Positions 2,915 to 38,586 of a stretch of 64,000 nucleotides of DNA are shown in pieces; the stretch's first letter is position 1; every line of letters starts with the position of its first letter. Below the pieces are notes generated by a model. That model was not told the origin of the DNA. It did not search any database and saw nothing but the letters and a program-made list of their open reading frames with translations. Both the position numbers and the translations under genes were made by a program. The DNA is from Hyphochytrium catenoides (Eukaryota; Protista; Hyphochytriomycota). The stretch spans positions 1-64,000 of the forward strand of contig FLMG01001570.1 in assembly GCA_900088475.1 (NCBI GenBank), read 5' to 3'.

Positions 2915-5900
2915 ATGTCGGACCTGATCGATAGCCCCAAGGCCAGTAGTCCTGCCATCGAGGATGTCAAACAGTCAGAAAAACAGCCAGAGCAACCCAT
3001 GCACAGCACAAAGAAGGATATGCATGAATCCGTTCAGGGGGAAAGACGATCCATGAGCTCAATGAAAGCCCAAGCGGACGCACCTGATATAAAGAGTCGG
3101 AAGAGCGAACCACTAATTAGTCCTCATCTCTCTATACCTCTCCCTTCAACATACCTTGACCCTGCCGGGAAGTGCATTCTTAACCTCCGAAAGCATGGTG
3201 TTCTGTATCGAGCCGTGGGCTCAAAGCTCAGGAAAGCGTACAGGAAGCAGTACCTCCAGTTAGGCCTGGATACTATTGGAGTGTTTGACTATGAGGCAGG
3301 TAAATTGACCTGTAACACTATCCAGGTGGTGTCACAGAAGTGCAGAGTTGAGATCAACTCCAAGAGCTCGTCCAATCTTAAGTTCACACTCTTCCATGCT
3401 GAGGGAGGGCATCGGGAGGAGGTGATGCAGTTCAAGGCAGCTTCACAGACAGAACGCGATGACTGGCTGAAGGCCTTTCAGCAGAGCATCAATGGCGAGC
3501 CCATTAACTTTCCGATACAAATCTCTCAGGAGGAGTTCCTCCAGCTGACCTCAGCCTTGTCTGAAGCCAAGACCCCCAAGTATCTCTGGGCCAGACCTCC
3601 TGAACTGCAGTGGGAGAAGGTTTCCGCTTCAGAGAAGTTCCATATCTCCCCGACTGGCTCTCCGCTAAGTGCCAGTGCCAAAGCTAGTAGCTTTAACATC
3701 AACGAGAACGCAGACACCTCCAAGACCGTTGGAGAGGAAGAAACACCAGCCAAGGCTCCTGAGGAAGGCAGTGGGGATACCCCGCCAGCTGCTAAGATGG
3801 AAGCGGAAGAAACCCGCCAACCTGACGTTGTCTCACCTAGTGTTCTAGACGACAACTCTCTTACCTCCTCTCAGACAATCTCCGCTCACAATGTGCAGGA
3901 CCCAGTAGACTCTGCCACACAAGTCGTACAAAGTGAGGTGGGGGAGGTCACATCTAGCTCGCGAGCGTCAACCGGGGACTCTTCCGAAAGTGGTAAACGA
4001 AGCTCTACTTCCTCTCAAAAGCAAGTGCCGAAGCCTCCCACCCTGACGTACAACCTTCGACGCTTTGGAGTGCACGTATTCTCAACCTTTTTCCAACCTG
4101 AAGTCCTCAGTGCAAGAGAAAGTTCGCCCTATGAAGTCGTCCTTGCGCTTAAGCCTCTTGACGTCCAAAAAGATGCACTGGACGGTCCTCAGTGTGAGAG
4201 GCAGACCCCTGTCGTGAACTTGGTCACGGAGCAGCTGCAACAAGGTGGCTTTACCGTCTCTAGATCAGAAGTAGCCTCTGCGCCACTCTGGAAGAGATTG
4301 CATGGGAATGATGAGACAAACACAAAGGAATATAAGCCCGACGCAATTCTCTTGAAGGTCCTACGCTTCTTCTCTTGTCTTTATAATTGCACGGTGGCAT
4401 ATTCTCTGCGTTCTTGCTCTTTCCGTACGGTCCTGCCATTGCTGGACCCCCTATCAATGTCCCTCTCTTTTCTCGCTCACTGTGCTGTCGGTGGATCTGC
4501 CAAACGTCAGTTTATAGTCTTAAGTTCCTAGCACTTGGAGCACTTAACTCTACACCGGTACAAGATCCACTAACCTGCTTTGGTTGTCTGCCTGTAATCA
4601 TCATTAGCTGAGCCTTGCCACGTCGGAGCTCCTTCGCGAGGCTGAAGTACAAAGACTGAGAAAGCGGTTGAAGGAGATGTCTACGTCCGGGGAGTACTAC
4701 GAAGAGTTCACTTCCACGAGGCGCCGACTATTTCTGGGCTTTGATGACGAGGGGAATATGCTAGAAACGTTTCTAGTTCCGGAAGAGAGGCAGCAGCTTA
4801 ACATGGGCAGGTAAGCAGAAGAGATCGAATAGAAGATGGCGCAGGACCGAACGGAGGGAGAGACCTGAAAAAGTTGATTTGGTTCGGAGTAAGCCTCAGA
4901 TAATAAGCCATACCTCTTTTTCTACGCAACAGACTCCACAGCCTTCCAGCTGGGGCGGTAGCGGCAGCTTTGACTCCTGAATCCAAGTCCAACAACACCG
5001 CACTGTTGCTGAAGTATCTTGAGAAGAAGGGCATCCTCCTCGCCAAATACAGCGTCCATGACTACAGTCAGAACCCTATAGGGACATCTTTGAGAGAACA
5101 CTGGCTACGGAGGAAACTCTTTGCCCCAACACCCTATTTGGACGTGAAGAAGGTCAGTGTTTGACTGAGCAAGAGTAGCTAAAACATCATGTCAAGCGGT
5201 CTTTTACTCCTGTGGCCCTTTGTCTATCCTATGTGATGACATTGAGGCCACTTACCTCAGGAGCTTGTTAACGTCTTCTTCTTGCTACCATCACAATGCC
5301 AATTGATGGTTTTCCGCTAGTGCCCCTACATTCCTACCATTAACTCGCTTATAATCCGCAACCATTGCCCTCTGTCATTTTCCTCCGCCAGTACTTTGGC
5401 GACCAAGTTGCCGTCTTTATCGACTGGGCAACCTACCATACCACCGCACTGAGCTTTCCAGCAATCCTCGGAGTGTGGGTCACTCTAAAGAGTGACACGA
5501 AAATGGCGCACATATTGGAACTTCTCTTCCCAGTGACGGTGATCGTCTGGACCTCCCTCTATATTTACTTCTGGAAGAGGCGAGCAGCCGCCAACAGATA
5601 CAAGTGGAACCTCGTCAGCCCTTCCTTAGAGGTAGATCACCTTGATCTGGCTACTTGCATCAACTGGTTTTGGCGACTCTTCTCTCCTTCTGACTTGTTT
5701 CTCGAGAACCTGGTTCTTCCAGAGCACTTAGAAAATCTTCACCTTCCTCTTTCTCTTAGCTCTTTGCCCTCTCCGGCTAACCCCTTTGCTCCTTGCCATC
5801 GTTCAGGGAGTGACTGAGCTAGAGATTGAGGAGGCTCGACTTCAGATAGAGGGGAACGGAGCCAGACACTTCAAGCCTCCCTTCATTACCCAGCAGCTGC

Positions 5901-7544
5901 CAAAGTATTTAGCCACAGCGCTGATATTTTTCTCACTATCTACACTGAATGTTGGACTGATTGGACTCGCTACCTATTTCAAGAATAGCCCTCCTTATAA
6001 TGAGGGCATGCTGAAGTTTGTCCCACTTGGAGGTACCCGGCGAGAATAGCCTCTAGCCAACTCAATGCGCATGTCCGTGTCTTTGACCCTGGCATCATTC
6101 CTCGAGTATCCCTCGTTTCGGCTCTTCTACGTCTATCTCTTTATATCTCTATCTTTTCTATGTTTCTCTGCACCGCTCTTTCTCTTTCTTGCTCTACCCT
6201 CCCACTCTCGCTTTCTCTTCGCCCCCTCTCTCTCTCATGCGCGGTCGTCTCTTTCTTTCTTTCTTTCTTACTTACTTCTCTCTTTCTCCCTCTCTCGTTC
6301 TTTCCATGCCGCCTGTCCTGTCCTACGTGCATTCCTAGGACAAGCACTATATATCGAGGTCGCATCTCTCATCTTTGACAATGTTGCCCGCTGGAATGTG
6401 GAGTGGATGAATCTTCGGTCCCATGAGGATTACGTTAACCAGTACATCATCAGGTCTGCCTCTCGCTCACCTTCTTCGCCTTGTCAATAACAAAAGGCGC
6501 CTATTAACTGCTGTTCATTACACCTTACTCTGCCATTAATCACTGTCTATTTGTTCGCTTCCTGCTCCTGCCTATGTCTTGCATTCGTTTATCTGAATGC
6601 CCCCACAAGAAAGCCTTCCTTGGTAATATGGTCCTGTCCTTGAGATCTCAGTGGTTCTTCCTCTTTCTGCAACATCGCTTTCGTCTTCCCCCAGAAGACT
6701 GTTCCGACACAATTCTTCAGTGGTAGCAGTATCTCAATTGCCCATCTAAGCCTAACTTTTGCTTTTCTTCCGCAGGAGAATCTTCTTCCTCTTTCCGACA
6801 AAATGTCTTCCTCTGTGGTACACAGCCTTCTTCCTGAAGGACGTCCCAATGCTCCGTGATCAGCTTCTTTCAATGGTCTTGACTGCTCAGATCATTGAAA
6901 TCGCTGGTCAGACCGTCTTCGCACACATCAAACACTGTGCTGTCACATTCAACTCTACTTACCAAAGGAGACAGCTCAGCACGCTGGCCGAGAGCCAGTT
7001 CCATTTAAAGAAGCTGGATCTCACCGCCAAGTACGCAGATAAAGTCCTTCAATTCGGATTCTTGACAATGTGGGCAGCTGCTTTCCCGTTGGGGTTCGCA
7101 CTGAACTTTATCGCCAACCTCCTAGACGTCCGTGCTCTGCCATATGCCTTGCTCTACACTTTCCGAAGACCGCTTGCCTCCAAGTGCTCCGGTATTGGGA
7201 TGTGGTATGGTGTCATTCTTGTGTCGTCAGTAATCGCCATCATTAACAACTCGGCATACATTTTGCTGACGGCCAAGCATCTGGATAACGTTTGGGACTC
7301 ACTCGGCGTCGATCGAACCTTGACAGTCTTTGGCGTGGAGCACTTGCTGCTTTTATTACACTTTGTGGTGGTGGCATACATTCCTCATGTCCCTAAGAAC
7401 GTGAGAAACCTCATTGCTCATGATATTGCGCTACGAAGGGTGATGATGAGAAAGTTTGTGGCCCAGAAGTGGGTGCAGATGAAGACGATTCTAGGGATGT
7501 CCTCTCCGCGAGGCCAAAGACCAAGAGGAGCCTCTCAAGAGTAA
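2915..7544 (+). CDS. Multi-exon anoctamin/TMEM16-family protein with N-terminal PH domain
   Basis: Exon 1 has a PH fold (RKHGVLYR...YRKQYLQL...FKAASQTERDDWLKAFQQSI). Spliced exons give ELLREAEVQRLRK, KYSVHD, LDVKK|YFGDQVAVFIDW, QFGFLTMWAAAFPL, RRPLASKCSGIGMW and EHLLLLLHFVV..IP.VP, all anoctamin signatures. Some internal exon boundaries are approximate. Confidence 0.88.
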
Positions 7545-7716
7545 TATCTGAGGCAGTCTTTACTTAGCGCTTCCTCTCCATACACAGAACGCGTTAGTGG
7601 CTTTGCTGCATATTAGAGCTACCTGCAGATCTGGTAAGGAACTTGGGACGATTTGAGAGTTGCTGCCGAGGTCACTTTTCAAGATAGGAATATGTCCATT
7701 ACTTCTAATCTAATTG

Positions 7717-8534
7717 TTAAATATCAACAAACCGACTGTTGCTCATGTATGTTCGCGTAGGTGCCACTTCAGCGGACGGCGACGGTGTCATCCCAATGTT
7801 TTCTGTGGTCTGCGGGCTGGAGGTAGAAGCCGTCTCATGTTGCGATCCCTTCTTCATGTCCACGTCCAGAGTGATAGCTCCGACACTAGCCCCTCCTCCC
7901 GGATATGCCCTTAATAGAGCATCCGCTGGGACGATGTCAATGGAGACTTCTGGAATACAGGCGATTCCCACCGTCACCGCAATGGAGGCCACCTTGTATC
8001 CCTTACCCTCGAGCCTGGAGTGCGGCGTCAGAGACAGATAGGTCCTCAGAGACATGTCTCATAACCTCTGCAACAGGTTGTATGTCTTACTTACCCTGTC
8101 GCAAGCTTTTCCACCCGAAAGATAGATGAGAGAATGGCCTTCTGTATGGTAGTTAATGAGGTGTCTTCTAGTACAATCTCTATGACGGACAAATCAGCGC
8201 CATGCAACTTCTGAAGCATCAGTGTGACCTTTGGTAGGAGAGTCAGATGCATGCGGAGCACGCTGAAGTCATAACTACGAAAGCGTGAAAGCGTGTAAGC
8301 TGGAGGCTATGCTAATATTATCAGCTTTGTACCTTACCCTATGACATTCAGCTGTGGTCTGAGGCGGGATGCCTCGTCGATGATCTGGCCCATAACTGTA
8401 TCGGATTGCTCTGTCTCCGCCGAAGGAGAAGGGGAAGCCTTGTCTTGCGACGACTCGCTCTTCTGTGTGTCCGAAGCGAATAGACCCTTCACCTCCTCCA
8501 ACATACCGCGAAATGAGGCCTGCGCGCCGCTCAT
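7717..8534 (-). CDS. Uncharacterised ~224-aa protein with internal two-fold repeat
   Basis: Hand-spliced exons 8534-8338, 8274-8095 and 8014-7717 have GT-AG boundaries and keep frame. The start ATG at 8534 is plausible, but upstream exons are not excluded. Confidence 0.65.
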
Positions 8535-9467
8535 ACTGAGTGTAACCTTCAAATAATGAGCAGAACCCAACCCTGGAACAACCAAGAGAACAAGAGATCA
8601 AAAGATCTTCCAACGACGTGCTGCTAGCTTCTGCCTGAGAAGGTCTAAACTCCTCTAACCCCTCCGTAAGCTCAGTGAGGATCAAGACTCTATCGATGGA
8701 TCCCAATGCTGCGACTCTCTTGTACTAGCTCTTGCTCTTCCTCTTGCAGAATGGAGCCCACGCCTCGCAGTCAACCCAGTGGGACCGTCACTCTCCTCTA
8801 GGTCGCATCAACAACCCGCCAACAGGTCGGAAGAAAGAGATCCCAGTCTTTTGTATAGGAGGAAAGAGGATCAGAAGCGTCCTCATTAGGGAACGACAGT
8901 ACAGTAGAAGAAAAAGAATCACAGCTCCTGGGGGTGGCCTGCTTATGCTACAAAAGGGTTCTGAACCATTCAGAGTTCCTCCAGGAGCATGGTTCTCAAA
9001 TGTAACCAACGTCTGTCGCGCTTTGCCTTCGACGAGTCATTCGACCGCTTGGCAAGGGTCCAATAGCTGTCAATAAGAGGAGATGTCACGCAGCGTGAAG
9101 ACCCGAGAAAACTTGAGGCAGAAGGCGAATCCGGTGTCGGAGGCGAGCTCCAGGACTAGAAGCTCTTCAGCTGCATCAGAACACGATAAGAGTGCTAGAG
9201 TAGGAGAGACGAGTGCCGAGCGCAAGGGAATGAAACCTTGGAACCCACACTTGGCTTCTGGTATTACGCTCGTGTCGTTTAGTGCTAGAACATACCAATG
9301 GCGGTAGAGGATGAAGACAGCCAGGACACTGGCGGCCGAGACTCCGGGAAAAGAGACTCCGGAGTGCAGGAGTCAGGGAGGAACCCTTACCTGTCGCATA
9401 TGAGGGGAAGGTAAAGAAGTTGGACCGTGCTGCCAGACATTTGCCGCTAACCTTGACAACTCCCAGT

Positions 9468-37419: not shown

Positions 37420-38586
37420 ATGAAGCGCTATCGGGGGAATATGCTGAGGGTTTACGCCCAACGCCATCTTGCCCGGCGGTCGACTCCTCTCTTGTTCTTA
37501 GCGGCCTTCGTGATCTTCTTCTACATATCAGCTCCTAGGACAACCCATAATATGGCGATAGAGGATGTACCTACGCCGCTTAGCTCTAGAACGTTGCACG
37601 CTAGGCTTAGAACTGCCCAAATAGGAGTCCAGGACTGCAGCTCTTTCGAGCGCACGGTGGCTGCCGTCGCTGATCTGGATCGGAAGTCTAAAGTAGAGGG
37701 TACTGCTGGGCGCCTGATGTTCCATAGTTATTTCAAGATAGGGACTTTATCCAGAACCTGCAACAACGGCAATGTCGCCTCTTACAGCTTGCGGTGGGAC
37801 GAGAAGCAAGCCATGTTTTCTCATCAGAATGAAGCTGGTCGAGGCTTCGAACTAAGCGAGCTAGTGAAGTTTAATGACAAGCTCTACACCTTTGACGACC
37901 GTACGGGTATCGTCTATGAGGTTCTTCGAGGAGGTGACGGCAAATATGGTGCGGTTCCTCGCCACATCCTTTCGGAGGGAAATGGTTCTTCGTCTGACAA
38001 GGGCATGAAGATTGAATGGGCCACTGTCAAGGATGGCGAACTCTACGTTGGAAGTACGGGCAAGGACTTCACTGACGACGATGGCTACGTCGTCCACCGA
38101 AAAAACCTATGGATAACGCGTATTGACGTGTGGGGTAATGTTCAGACTGAGGACTGGAGTGAGCGGTATGATAGACTGAAGGAGGCCGTCGGAGTACCCT
38201 TCCCTGGCTACATCGTACATGAGGCCATTGAATGGAGCAGCATCCGGCAGCAATGGGTTATTCTACCTAGACGAGTTAGCTCCGAAGCCTACAACGAGGT
38301 TTATGACGAGTCAAGGGGATCCGACGTACTCATCCTTGCTAATGAAGACTTCACAGAATTTCAAGTGAAGCACATTGGTAAGCTCACCAACACGCGAGGC
38401 TTCTCTACCTTCAAGTTTGTCCCTGATACCAGTGACTCTGTAATCGTGGCGCTTAAGAGCGAAGAAAATGAAGCGCTAGGCACTCAGGCCACATATGCTA
38501 CAATTCTCGACATTGATAGCGGAGTTGAGTATGTTCCTGAGACTCTGATGGATTCACTGAAGTACGAGGGCATTGCCTTCATTTGA
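37420..38586 (+). CDS. CANT1: Calcium-activated nucleotidase / apyrase (CANT1/SHAPY family), type II membrane anchor, intronless
   Basis: VADLD, GRGFELSELV.FN.KLYTFDDRTG, KGMKIEWATVKDGELYVGSTGK, GYIVHEA, LPRR, RGFSTFKFVP, ALKSEE, KYEGIAFI. N-terminal hydrophobic anchor. Confidence 0.95.
   Translation: MKRYRGNMLRVYAQRHLARRSTPLLFLAAFVIFFYISAPRTTHNMAIEDVPTPLSSRTLHARLRTAQIGVQDCSSFERTVAAVADLDRKSKVEGTAGRLMFHSYFKIGTLSRTCNNGNVASYSLRWDEKQAMFSHQNEAGRGFELSELVKFNDKLYTFDDRTGIVYEVLRGGDGKYGAVPRHILSEGNGSSSDKGMKIEWATVKDGELYVGSTGKDFTDDDGYVVHRKNLWITRIDVWGNVQTEDWSERYDRLKEAVGVPFPGYIVHEAIEWSSIRQQWVILPRRVSSEAYNEVYDESRGSDVLILANEDFTEFQVKHIGKLTNTRGFSTFKFVPDTSDSVIVALKSEENEALGTQATYATILDIDSGVEYVPETLMDSLKYEGIAFI

Follow-up and report, generated by a model that had tools for sequence, protein, structure and literature searches.

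Hyphochytrium catenoides encodes a divergent TMEM16/anoctamin protein whose nearest match in both sequence and fold is TMEM16K and whose pattern of Ca2+ ligand residues is far from the family norm. The gene is located in a 64,000-nucleotide stretch of genomic DNA (contig FLMG01001570.1 of assembly GCA_900088475.1, positions 1 to 64,000 of the forward strand), which is referred to here as the window and whose first nucleotide is position 1 for all coordinates. The five acidic orthosteric ligands of Ca2+-activated TMEM16 proteins are incomplete in this protein: under a gap-free alignment, the residues that correspond to E702, D738, and E654 of mouse TMEM16A (mTMEM16A) are K901, L937, and Q861. 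Our preferred reading, to which we give about an even chance, is that this is a functional, divergent TMEM16K-like member of the family whose activity would be uncoupled from Ca2+.

Gene structure and domain organization

The anoctamin gene occupies positions 2915-7544 on the + strand and consists of seven exons in the spliced model, which encode a product of 1071 amino acids. All six introns (119-322 bp) are bounded by GT-AG, the spliced reading frame is open, and the stop codon TAA is found at 7542-7544. The window as a whole is eukaryotic DNA, with ~49% G+C and short introns. The published genome of H. catenoides is diploid, with ~2.1% SNPs and a mean intron length of 208 bp; it was sequenced to ~312x with GAIIx and HiSeq data, and its scaffolds were deposited unannotated (PMC5795050). 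Exon 1 (2915-4357, +) encodes a PH domain, a linker, and the first part of the cytosolic N-terminal region of the anoctamin, and exons 2 (4608-4810, +) and 3 (4933-5152, +) each encode a further part of that region. The membrane domain is encoded by exon 4 (5392-5631, +; TM1-TM2), exon 5 (5807-6032, +; the TM3-TM4 region), exon 6 (6339-6453, +), and exon 7, the last exon (6776-7544, +; TM5-TM10). The TMEM16/anoctamin family profile (PF04547) was matched across the membrane domain in exon 4 (E = 9.8e-15), exon 6 (E = 0.048), and the last exon (E = 4.1e-33), and no Pfam positions were matched in exon 5.

The splice junctions are validated by the fact that amino acids 474-1034 of the spliced protein align to full-length relatives in a single HMMER domain (P0143, E = 1.4e-44; P0055, E = 4.9e-44). 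When position 6453 is spliced directly to 6776, the resulting peptide "...QYIIRRIFFLFPTKCLPLWYTAFFLKD" is gap-free against TMEM16K. A candidate mini-exon at ~6610-6622 (encoding KAFL) was rejected because its inclusion breaks the frame. Intron 5 contains a CT-rich simple repeat (6140-6320) over which read depth is ~4-fold up and contigs break, and length variants of 2-5 nt occur at 6190-6196.

The PH domain (3188-3490, amino acids 92-192, +) was recognized by Pfam PF00169 (E = 3.5e-6; 27.9 bits, with a cut-off of 25.1) and has a basic beta1-beta2 stretch. Its best match in the PDB, the PH domain of TAPP1, is weak (E = 0.27). The domain is followed by a linker of ~200 amino acids (3500-4114, amino acids 196-400, +) that is rich in Ser, Glu, Pro, Thr, and Ala and net acidic in composition and that is probably disordered. 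The cytosolic N-terminal region of the anoctamin core (4127-5152, amino acids 405-622, +) comprises the end of exon 1 together with exons 2 and 3. HMMER alignments to relatives begin at amino acids 474-620 and continue into the membrane domain, and no Pfam model of the anoctamin N-domain was matched. The fusion of a PH domain to an anoctamin does not depend on splice prediction since exon 1 alone spans the PH domain and reaches into the N-terminal region of the anoctamin. Among relatives, a PH domain was found in none of 154 hit proteins by phmmer and in none of the 10 best hits by Pfam.

Relationship to other TMEM16 proteins

When the last exon was compared with PDB chains using phmmer, the best match was TMEM16K/Anoctamin-10 (E = 1.7e-18), followed by TMEM16F (3.5e-12) and TMEM16A (8.5e-12) and, more weakly, by the fungal scramblases nhTMEM16 (3.8e-9) and afTMEM16 (1.7e-7) and by Ist2 (0.14). 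Structure prediction, which the first-pass annotation of this DNA had suggested for the Ca2+ site, confirmed the TMEM16 fold. The AF2 model of the last exon alone (TM5-TM10) has a pLDDT of 85, and the top 48 Foldseek matches to it are all TMEM16 structures, of which TMEM16K is the best (E = 2e-7). Since this fragment was modeled in isolation, the superposition is only moderate, with TM-scores of 0.46-0.49 by query length. TM6 is drawn in the model as one continuous helix (exon residues 23-63), and no functional state was read from it.

An exhaustive HMMER search of 1.84 billion cluster representatives returned 3238 relatives, the best hit having 30% identity, and no orthologue was found among these representatives, of which none exceeded ~39% identity. 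A scan of JGI metagenome contigs found no relative. Among relatives with a named source, those closest to the protein are anoctamins of the oomycetes Thraustotheca and Lagenidium. In a 65-sequence alignment, the H. catenoides protein keeps all 3 invariant and all 11 near-invariant columns, and the QFG, FPL, RRP, and IGxW motifs of TM7-TM9, along with the N of NN, are all present. The initial impression that the signature flanking the Ca2+ site is intact and that the protein does not show general decay is therefore borne out.

Ligand changes in TM7 and TM8

The orthosteric site is represented in the last exon by two peptides on the + strand, AQIIEIAGQT (6885-6914, amino acids 853-862) in TM6 and TAKYADKV...DVRALP (7023-7142, amino acids 899-938) in TM7-TM8. 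TM7 (7014-7094, +) carries K901 and D904, followed by intact QFGF and FPL motifs, and TM8 (7095-7175, +) carries A929, N930, D933, and L937, followed by the RRP motif. K901 (7029-7031, +) corresponds to E702 of mTMEM16A (E667 of TMEM16F and D503 of nhTMEM16), and D904 (7038-7040, +) corresponds to E705 (E506 of nhTMEM16). In TM8, A929 (7113-7115, +) is found at the position of mTMEM16A N730, D933 (7125-7127, +) at that of E734, and L937 (7137-7139, +) at that of D738, while N930 (7116-7118, +) retains the asparagine of N731. The replacements of E705 and E734 by D904 and D933 are conservative changes from Glu to Asp. HMMER alignments to TMEM16K, TMEM16F, and TMEM16A are gap-free from upstream of QFGF to past IGxW, and the TM7/TM8 assignments are identical by a 58-sequence profile and by MAFFT. 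The five substitutions that had originally been read by eye (E702 to K, E705 to D, N730 to A, E734 to D, and D738 to L) are the same by all three methods.

Among the best 150 of the 3238 relatives, the six TM7/TM8 columns hold D/E in 131, E in 113, N in 110, N in 147, E in 111, and D in 122, respectively. Within these best 150, only one relative (P0097) has Lys at the E702 column, and Leu at the D738 column is outside the eight commonest residues. The changes in the H. catenoides protein are concentrated on ligands, since the ligand columns deviate while all 14 conserved columns are kept.

TM6 and the remaining Ca2+ ligand positions

The register of TM6 (6864-6935, amino acids 846-869, +) differs between alignments. 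Gap-free alignments (to TMEM16K and by the 58-sequence profile) place Q861 (6909-6911, +) at E654 (TMEM16K E448) and E857 (6897-6899, +) at N650 (TMEM16K N444), whereas MAFFT and HMMER against the nearest relatives place E857 at E654 (the Glu of E-x-x-x-P), an assignment that needs a deletion of 4 residues (one helical turn) upstream. E857 sits one turn above Q861. Under either alignment, TM6 retains a carboxylate at the site, and E857 may be the equivalent of E654. The probable change of E654 to Q that was proposed in the first-pass annotation is consequently supported by the gap-free HMMER and profile alignments and contradicted by the other two. A TM6 subgroup characterized by 'E..P' was also considered and was rejected as an artefact of a 4-residue insertion made by HMMER; those relatives have an ordinary N/Q-x-x-x-E-x-x-x-P.

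In mTMEM16A, the inner site (S1) is formed by E654, E702, and D738, with E734 shared, and the residues around the outer site (S2) are E705, E734, N650, N651, and N730 (PMC6028493). Two or three of the three dedicated S1 ligands are gone from the H. catenoides protein (E702 and D738 are replaced by K901 and L937, and E654 by Q861 if the gap-free alignment is followed), and one of them is now a cation. At S2, the shortened carboxylates D904 and D933 remain, N651 and N730 are gone, and E857 is possibly gained. The net charge of the site shifts from -5 to about -2. The earlier description of the site as largely dismantled holds insofar as the replacements by K901 and L937 are real, but it goes too far in that three carboxylates remain at or near the site (E857, D904, and D933).

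A third Ca2+ site (TM2/TM10) consists of E395/D859 in TMEM16F and E259/D615 in TMEM16K (PMC7786149, PMC6718402). Both carboxylates are absent from the H. catenoides protein. Y681 (5566-5568, +) is located at the TM2 position of TMEM16F E395/TMEM16K E259 in the HMMER alignment with TMEM16F residues 379-412, and H1020 (7386-7388, +), which is part of AYIPHVPKN at the end of TM10 (7374-7400, +), is located at TMEM16K D615/TMEM16F D859 in the HMMER alignments with both proteins. Loss of the third site carries less weight because it is not conserved in fungal TMEM16 proteins (PMC6718402).

The main rival to a Ca2+-uncoupled protein is one with a residual single Ca2+ site. E857, D904, and D933 would, together with N930 and Q861, bind one Ca2+ at S2, and K901 would only neutralize excess charge, making the protein a low-affinity or single-ion Ca2+-activated TMEM16. 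Such an arrangement is consistent with the presence of carboxylates on all three site helices, with the conservative nature of the changes to Asp at E705 and E734, and with the retention of N731. However, each of the three S2 asparagines of TMEM16A has either disappeared or moved, the side chains at the E705 and E734 positions have been shortened by one methylene in the change from Glu to Asp, the third site is gone too, and neutralizing any one of the orthosteric ligands of TMEM16A greatly lowers its Ca2+ sensitivity (PMC6028493, PMC7786149). We regard continued regulation by Ca2+ through S2 as possible, if doubtful.

Degenerate Ca2+ sites among relatives

The relatives were surveyed using the 141 nearest cluster representatives in which all four TM7/TM8 acidic columns are aligned. 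All four acidic ligands are kept in 102 of the 141 and two or fewer in 28, and Lys or Arg is present in one of the four columns in 8 (P0084, P0097, P0141, P0117, P0066, P0052, P0092, and P0127). With approximately one-fifth of the nearest relatives degenerate and a basic residue at a ligand column in 8/141, the rarity that the first-pass annotation implied for such a site was overstated. P0097 (KENNED) has Lys at the same column as K901, P0084 (DKNNED) has Lys at the Ist2 position, P0141 reads RSHNED, and P0003, from Lagenidium giganteum, reads DDNNGT. None of the degenerate-site relatives has the full K-D-A-N-D-L pattern of the H. catenoides protein.

On a tree of the relatives that was built without the ligand columns (from 140 columns only, and with poor resolution), the degenerate label changes 9 times, and at least 7 of these changes are forced by well-supported branches. 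The H. catenoides protein is placed in no well-supported clade, and its neighbors on the tree are canonical. Its loss of the site seems to add a further independent case to the repeated losses in this family, and a surrogate cation at a ligand position may be a recurrent theme. Given that ~1/5 of the nearest TMEM16 clusters are degenerate, Ca2+-independent TMEM16 proteins may be much more frequent among protists than one would expect from published work on animals and fungi.

Variation in sequencing reads and probable constraint on the membrane core

The sequence is confirmed by DNA runs of the source organism, which include two runs of a single 2011 sample and a deep run of 2017 (~300-400x). 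A contig from sequencing run X1 (~380x, over 6520-7600) has three differences from the window, all of them intronic, and none is listed in 6776-7544. Among the variants listed (50 more are undisplayed, and the contig may be of the same haplotype as the window), X1 contigs have a single difference, which is synonymous, in the 1350 nt of exons 4-7, compared with 7 in 959 nt of non-exon sequence (Fisher p = 0.011) and 20 in 953 nt of the linker (p = 2e-7). This suggests that the membrane core is under purifying selection. The PH domain and linker (3283-4275) have at least 15 nonsynonymous and at least 12 synonymous differences among the variants listed, with ~2% differences in the linker. Variation of ~2% in the segment joining the PH domain to the core is in keeping with a diploid source and with weak constraint on the linker.

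At the L937 codon (7136-7139), one X3 contig (3.5x) has two single-C insertions, one after 7136 and one after 7139, which are probably sequencing errors because they are absent from X1 (~380x) and X2 (27x). A 182-nt contig from X4, an 'invertebrate metagenome' run of 2022, covers the TM7-TM8 site (7004-7185) with two differences (C>T and G>A), which indicates that the same or a very close organism was present in an animal-associated sample.

The constraint on the core also bears on whether the protein transports anything. Transport could have been lost, leaving the TMEM16 core as the scaffold for an anchor, tether, or regulatory subunit in which the PH domain does the work. In favor of this are the PH-linker layout, which would be suitable for a tether, the degeneracy of the Ca2+ sites, and the lack of Pfam matches in exon 5 (TM3-TM4). 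Nevertheless, the core is more constrained than the introns or the linker, no conserved family column has been lost, even near the groove-forming helices TM6-TM8, and Ist2, which was once deemed inactive, turned out to be a scramblase (PMC12618243), so that a purely structural role seems quite unlikely to us. It is highly improbable that the gene is a decaying pseudogene in which the ligand changes reflect general erosion: although the sequencing runs found for the gene are all DNA and none RNA, the orthologue search was empty, and the low-depth X3 contig has the insertions at 7136 and 7139, the 1071-codon frame is open over seven exons with canonical splice sites, 14 of 14 conserved columns are kept, the core differences listed are synonymous only in a core far less variable than the introns, and the insertions are missing from the deep X1 run and from X2.

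A possible lysine substitute for Ca2+

To our knowledge, constitutive scrambling by means of a lysine that takes over from Ca2+ has so far been demonstrated for no TMEM16 other than Ist2. Like the H. catenoides protein, Ist2 of Saccharomyces cerevisiae (PDB 9hhe, 9qja) combines the TMEM16 fold with a degenerate orthosteric site and an alpha7 lysine in place of an acidic ligand. It is a constitutive scramblase at ER-plasma-membrane contacts and has a long disordered extension that ends in an anionic-lipid-binding module. In the 2025 structure of Ist2, alpha7 and alpha8 carry other residues in place of three acidic ones, and K443, which replaces E506 of nhTMEM16, forms salt bridges to E379 (alpha6) and D476 (alpha8); the protein, earlier thought to be inactive, scrambles lipids constitutively and independently of Ca2+ (PMC12618243). 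The C terminus of Ist2 binds PI(4,5)P2 of the plasma membrane, and the N-terminal domain of TMEM16K binds endolysosomal phosphoinositides at ER-endosome contacts (PMC7335067).

If the H. catenoides protein is active and uncoupled from Ca2+, as we prefer, the ammonium group of K901 would lie approximately where the S1 cation is otherwise bound and would form salt bridges to E857 (TM6) and D933 (TM8). The group would be about where the metal would sit because the lysine is at a ligand position, an argument based on the geometry of side-chain length and not on measured distances. With these bridges in place, TM6 would be kept packed on TM7/TM8 as in the 'Ca2+-bound' state, the role that K443 plays in Ist2, and the protein would scramble lipids constitutively or act as a leak channel. 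The PH domain on its flexible linker of ~200 amino acids would supply regulation or targeting that is no longer given by Ca2+, and it could do this by binding phosphoinositides, either those of an opposing membrane, which would make the protein a contact-site tether in the manner of Ist2 or TMEM16K, or those of the membrane in which the protein itself sits. The idea that a lysine stands in for the bound cation had already been raised in the initial annotation; K443 of Ist2 provides a precedent for it (PMC12618243), but the column of the lysine is not the same (E702 versus E705).

The two proteins are not orthologous, as Ist2 is the weakest of the PDB hits by phmmer (E = 0.14, versus 1.7e-18 for TMEM16K), and they differ in several respects. 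The lysine of the H. catenoides protein occupies the D503/E702 column, whereas that of Ist2 occupies the E506/E705 column, three residues later, where the H. catenoides protein has D904; this counts against a close analogy. The acidic partners that are kept are at the E705, E734, and TM6 positions in the H. catenoides protein and are the equivalents of E654 and D738 in Ist2. The extension is N-terminal in the former, with a PH domain and a low-complexity linker of ~200 amino acids, and C-terminal in the latter, with a polybasic stretch. Human TMEM16K/anoctamin-10 (PDB 5oc9, 6r7x-z), an ER scramblase, is the best match in both sequence and structure, with an identity of ~25-30%. Unlike the H. 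catenoides protein, TMEM16K has a complete orthosteric site (N444, Q445, and E448, and the D/E-E and N-N-E-D columns) and lacks both a PH domain and a long linker. It also keeps the third site (E259 and D615), and its scrambling is enhanced by Ca2+. A literature search for the engineered mutants E702K, E705K, E667K, E670K, D503K, and E506K gave unrelated proteins only.

The H. catenoides protein would be convergent with Ist2, that is, a second and independent case of a known lysine trick and not a new kind of protein, and the structural precedent of Ist2 lowers the novelty of this interpretation. A fuller proposal, which we make tentatively and consider somewhat improbable, is that H. catenoides independently evolved an Ist2-like machine in which a TMEM16K-like scramblase is locked open by a lysine that imitates the S1 Ca2+ and a phosphoinositide-binding PH domain, attached by the long flexible linker, bridges to another membrane. 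If this is true, eukaryotes would have arrived at 'tethered-cation' TMEM16 scramblases at contact sites repeatedly, and such proteins would not be a peculiarity of yeast. A second, unrelated TMEM16 with its lysine elsewhere and with other partners would be a natural test of the Ist2 mechanism and would reveal at which ligand positions a surrogate cation can be accommodated. The presence of the PH-linker extension also suggests that targeting to contact sites may evolve hand in hand with the loss of control by Ca2+.

Neighboring genes

The anoctamin gene has a convergent neighborhood on the - strand (7717-8706), where ORFs of 112 and 143 amino acids matched no Pfam family at E < 0.01. Elsewhere in the window, a single-exon ORF of 388 amino acids (37420-38586, +) encodes a CANT1-type apyrase (Pfam PF06079, E = 2.5e-102). 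The Atlas clusters closest to it are of arthropod and chordate origin, an unexpected affinity for a gene in a stramenopile-like genome.
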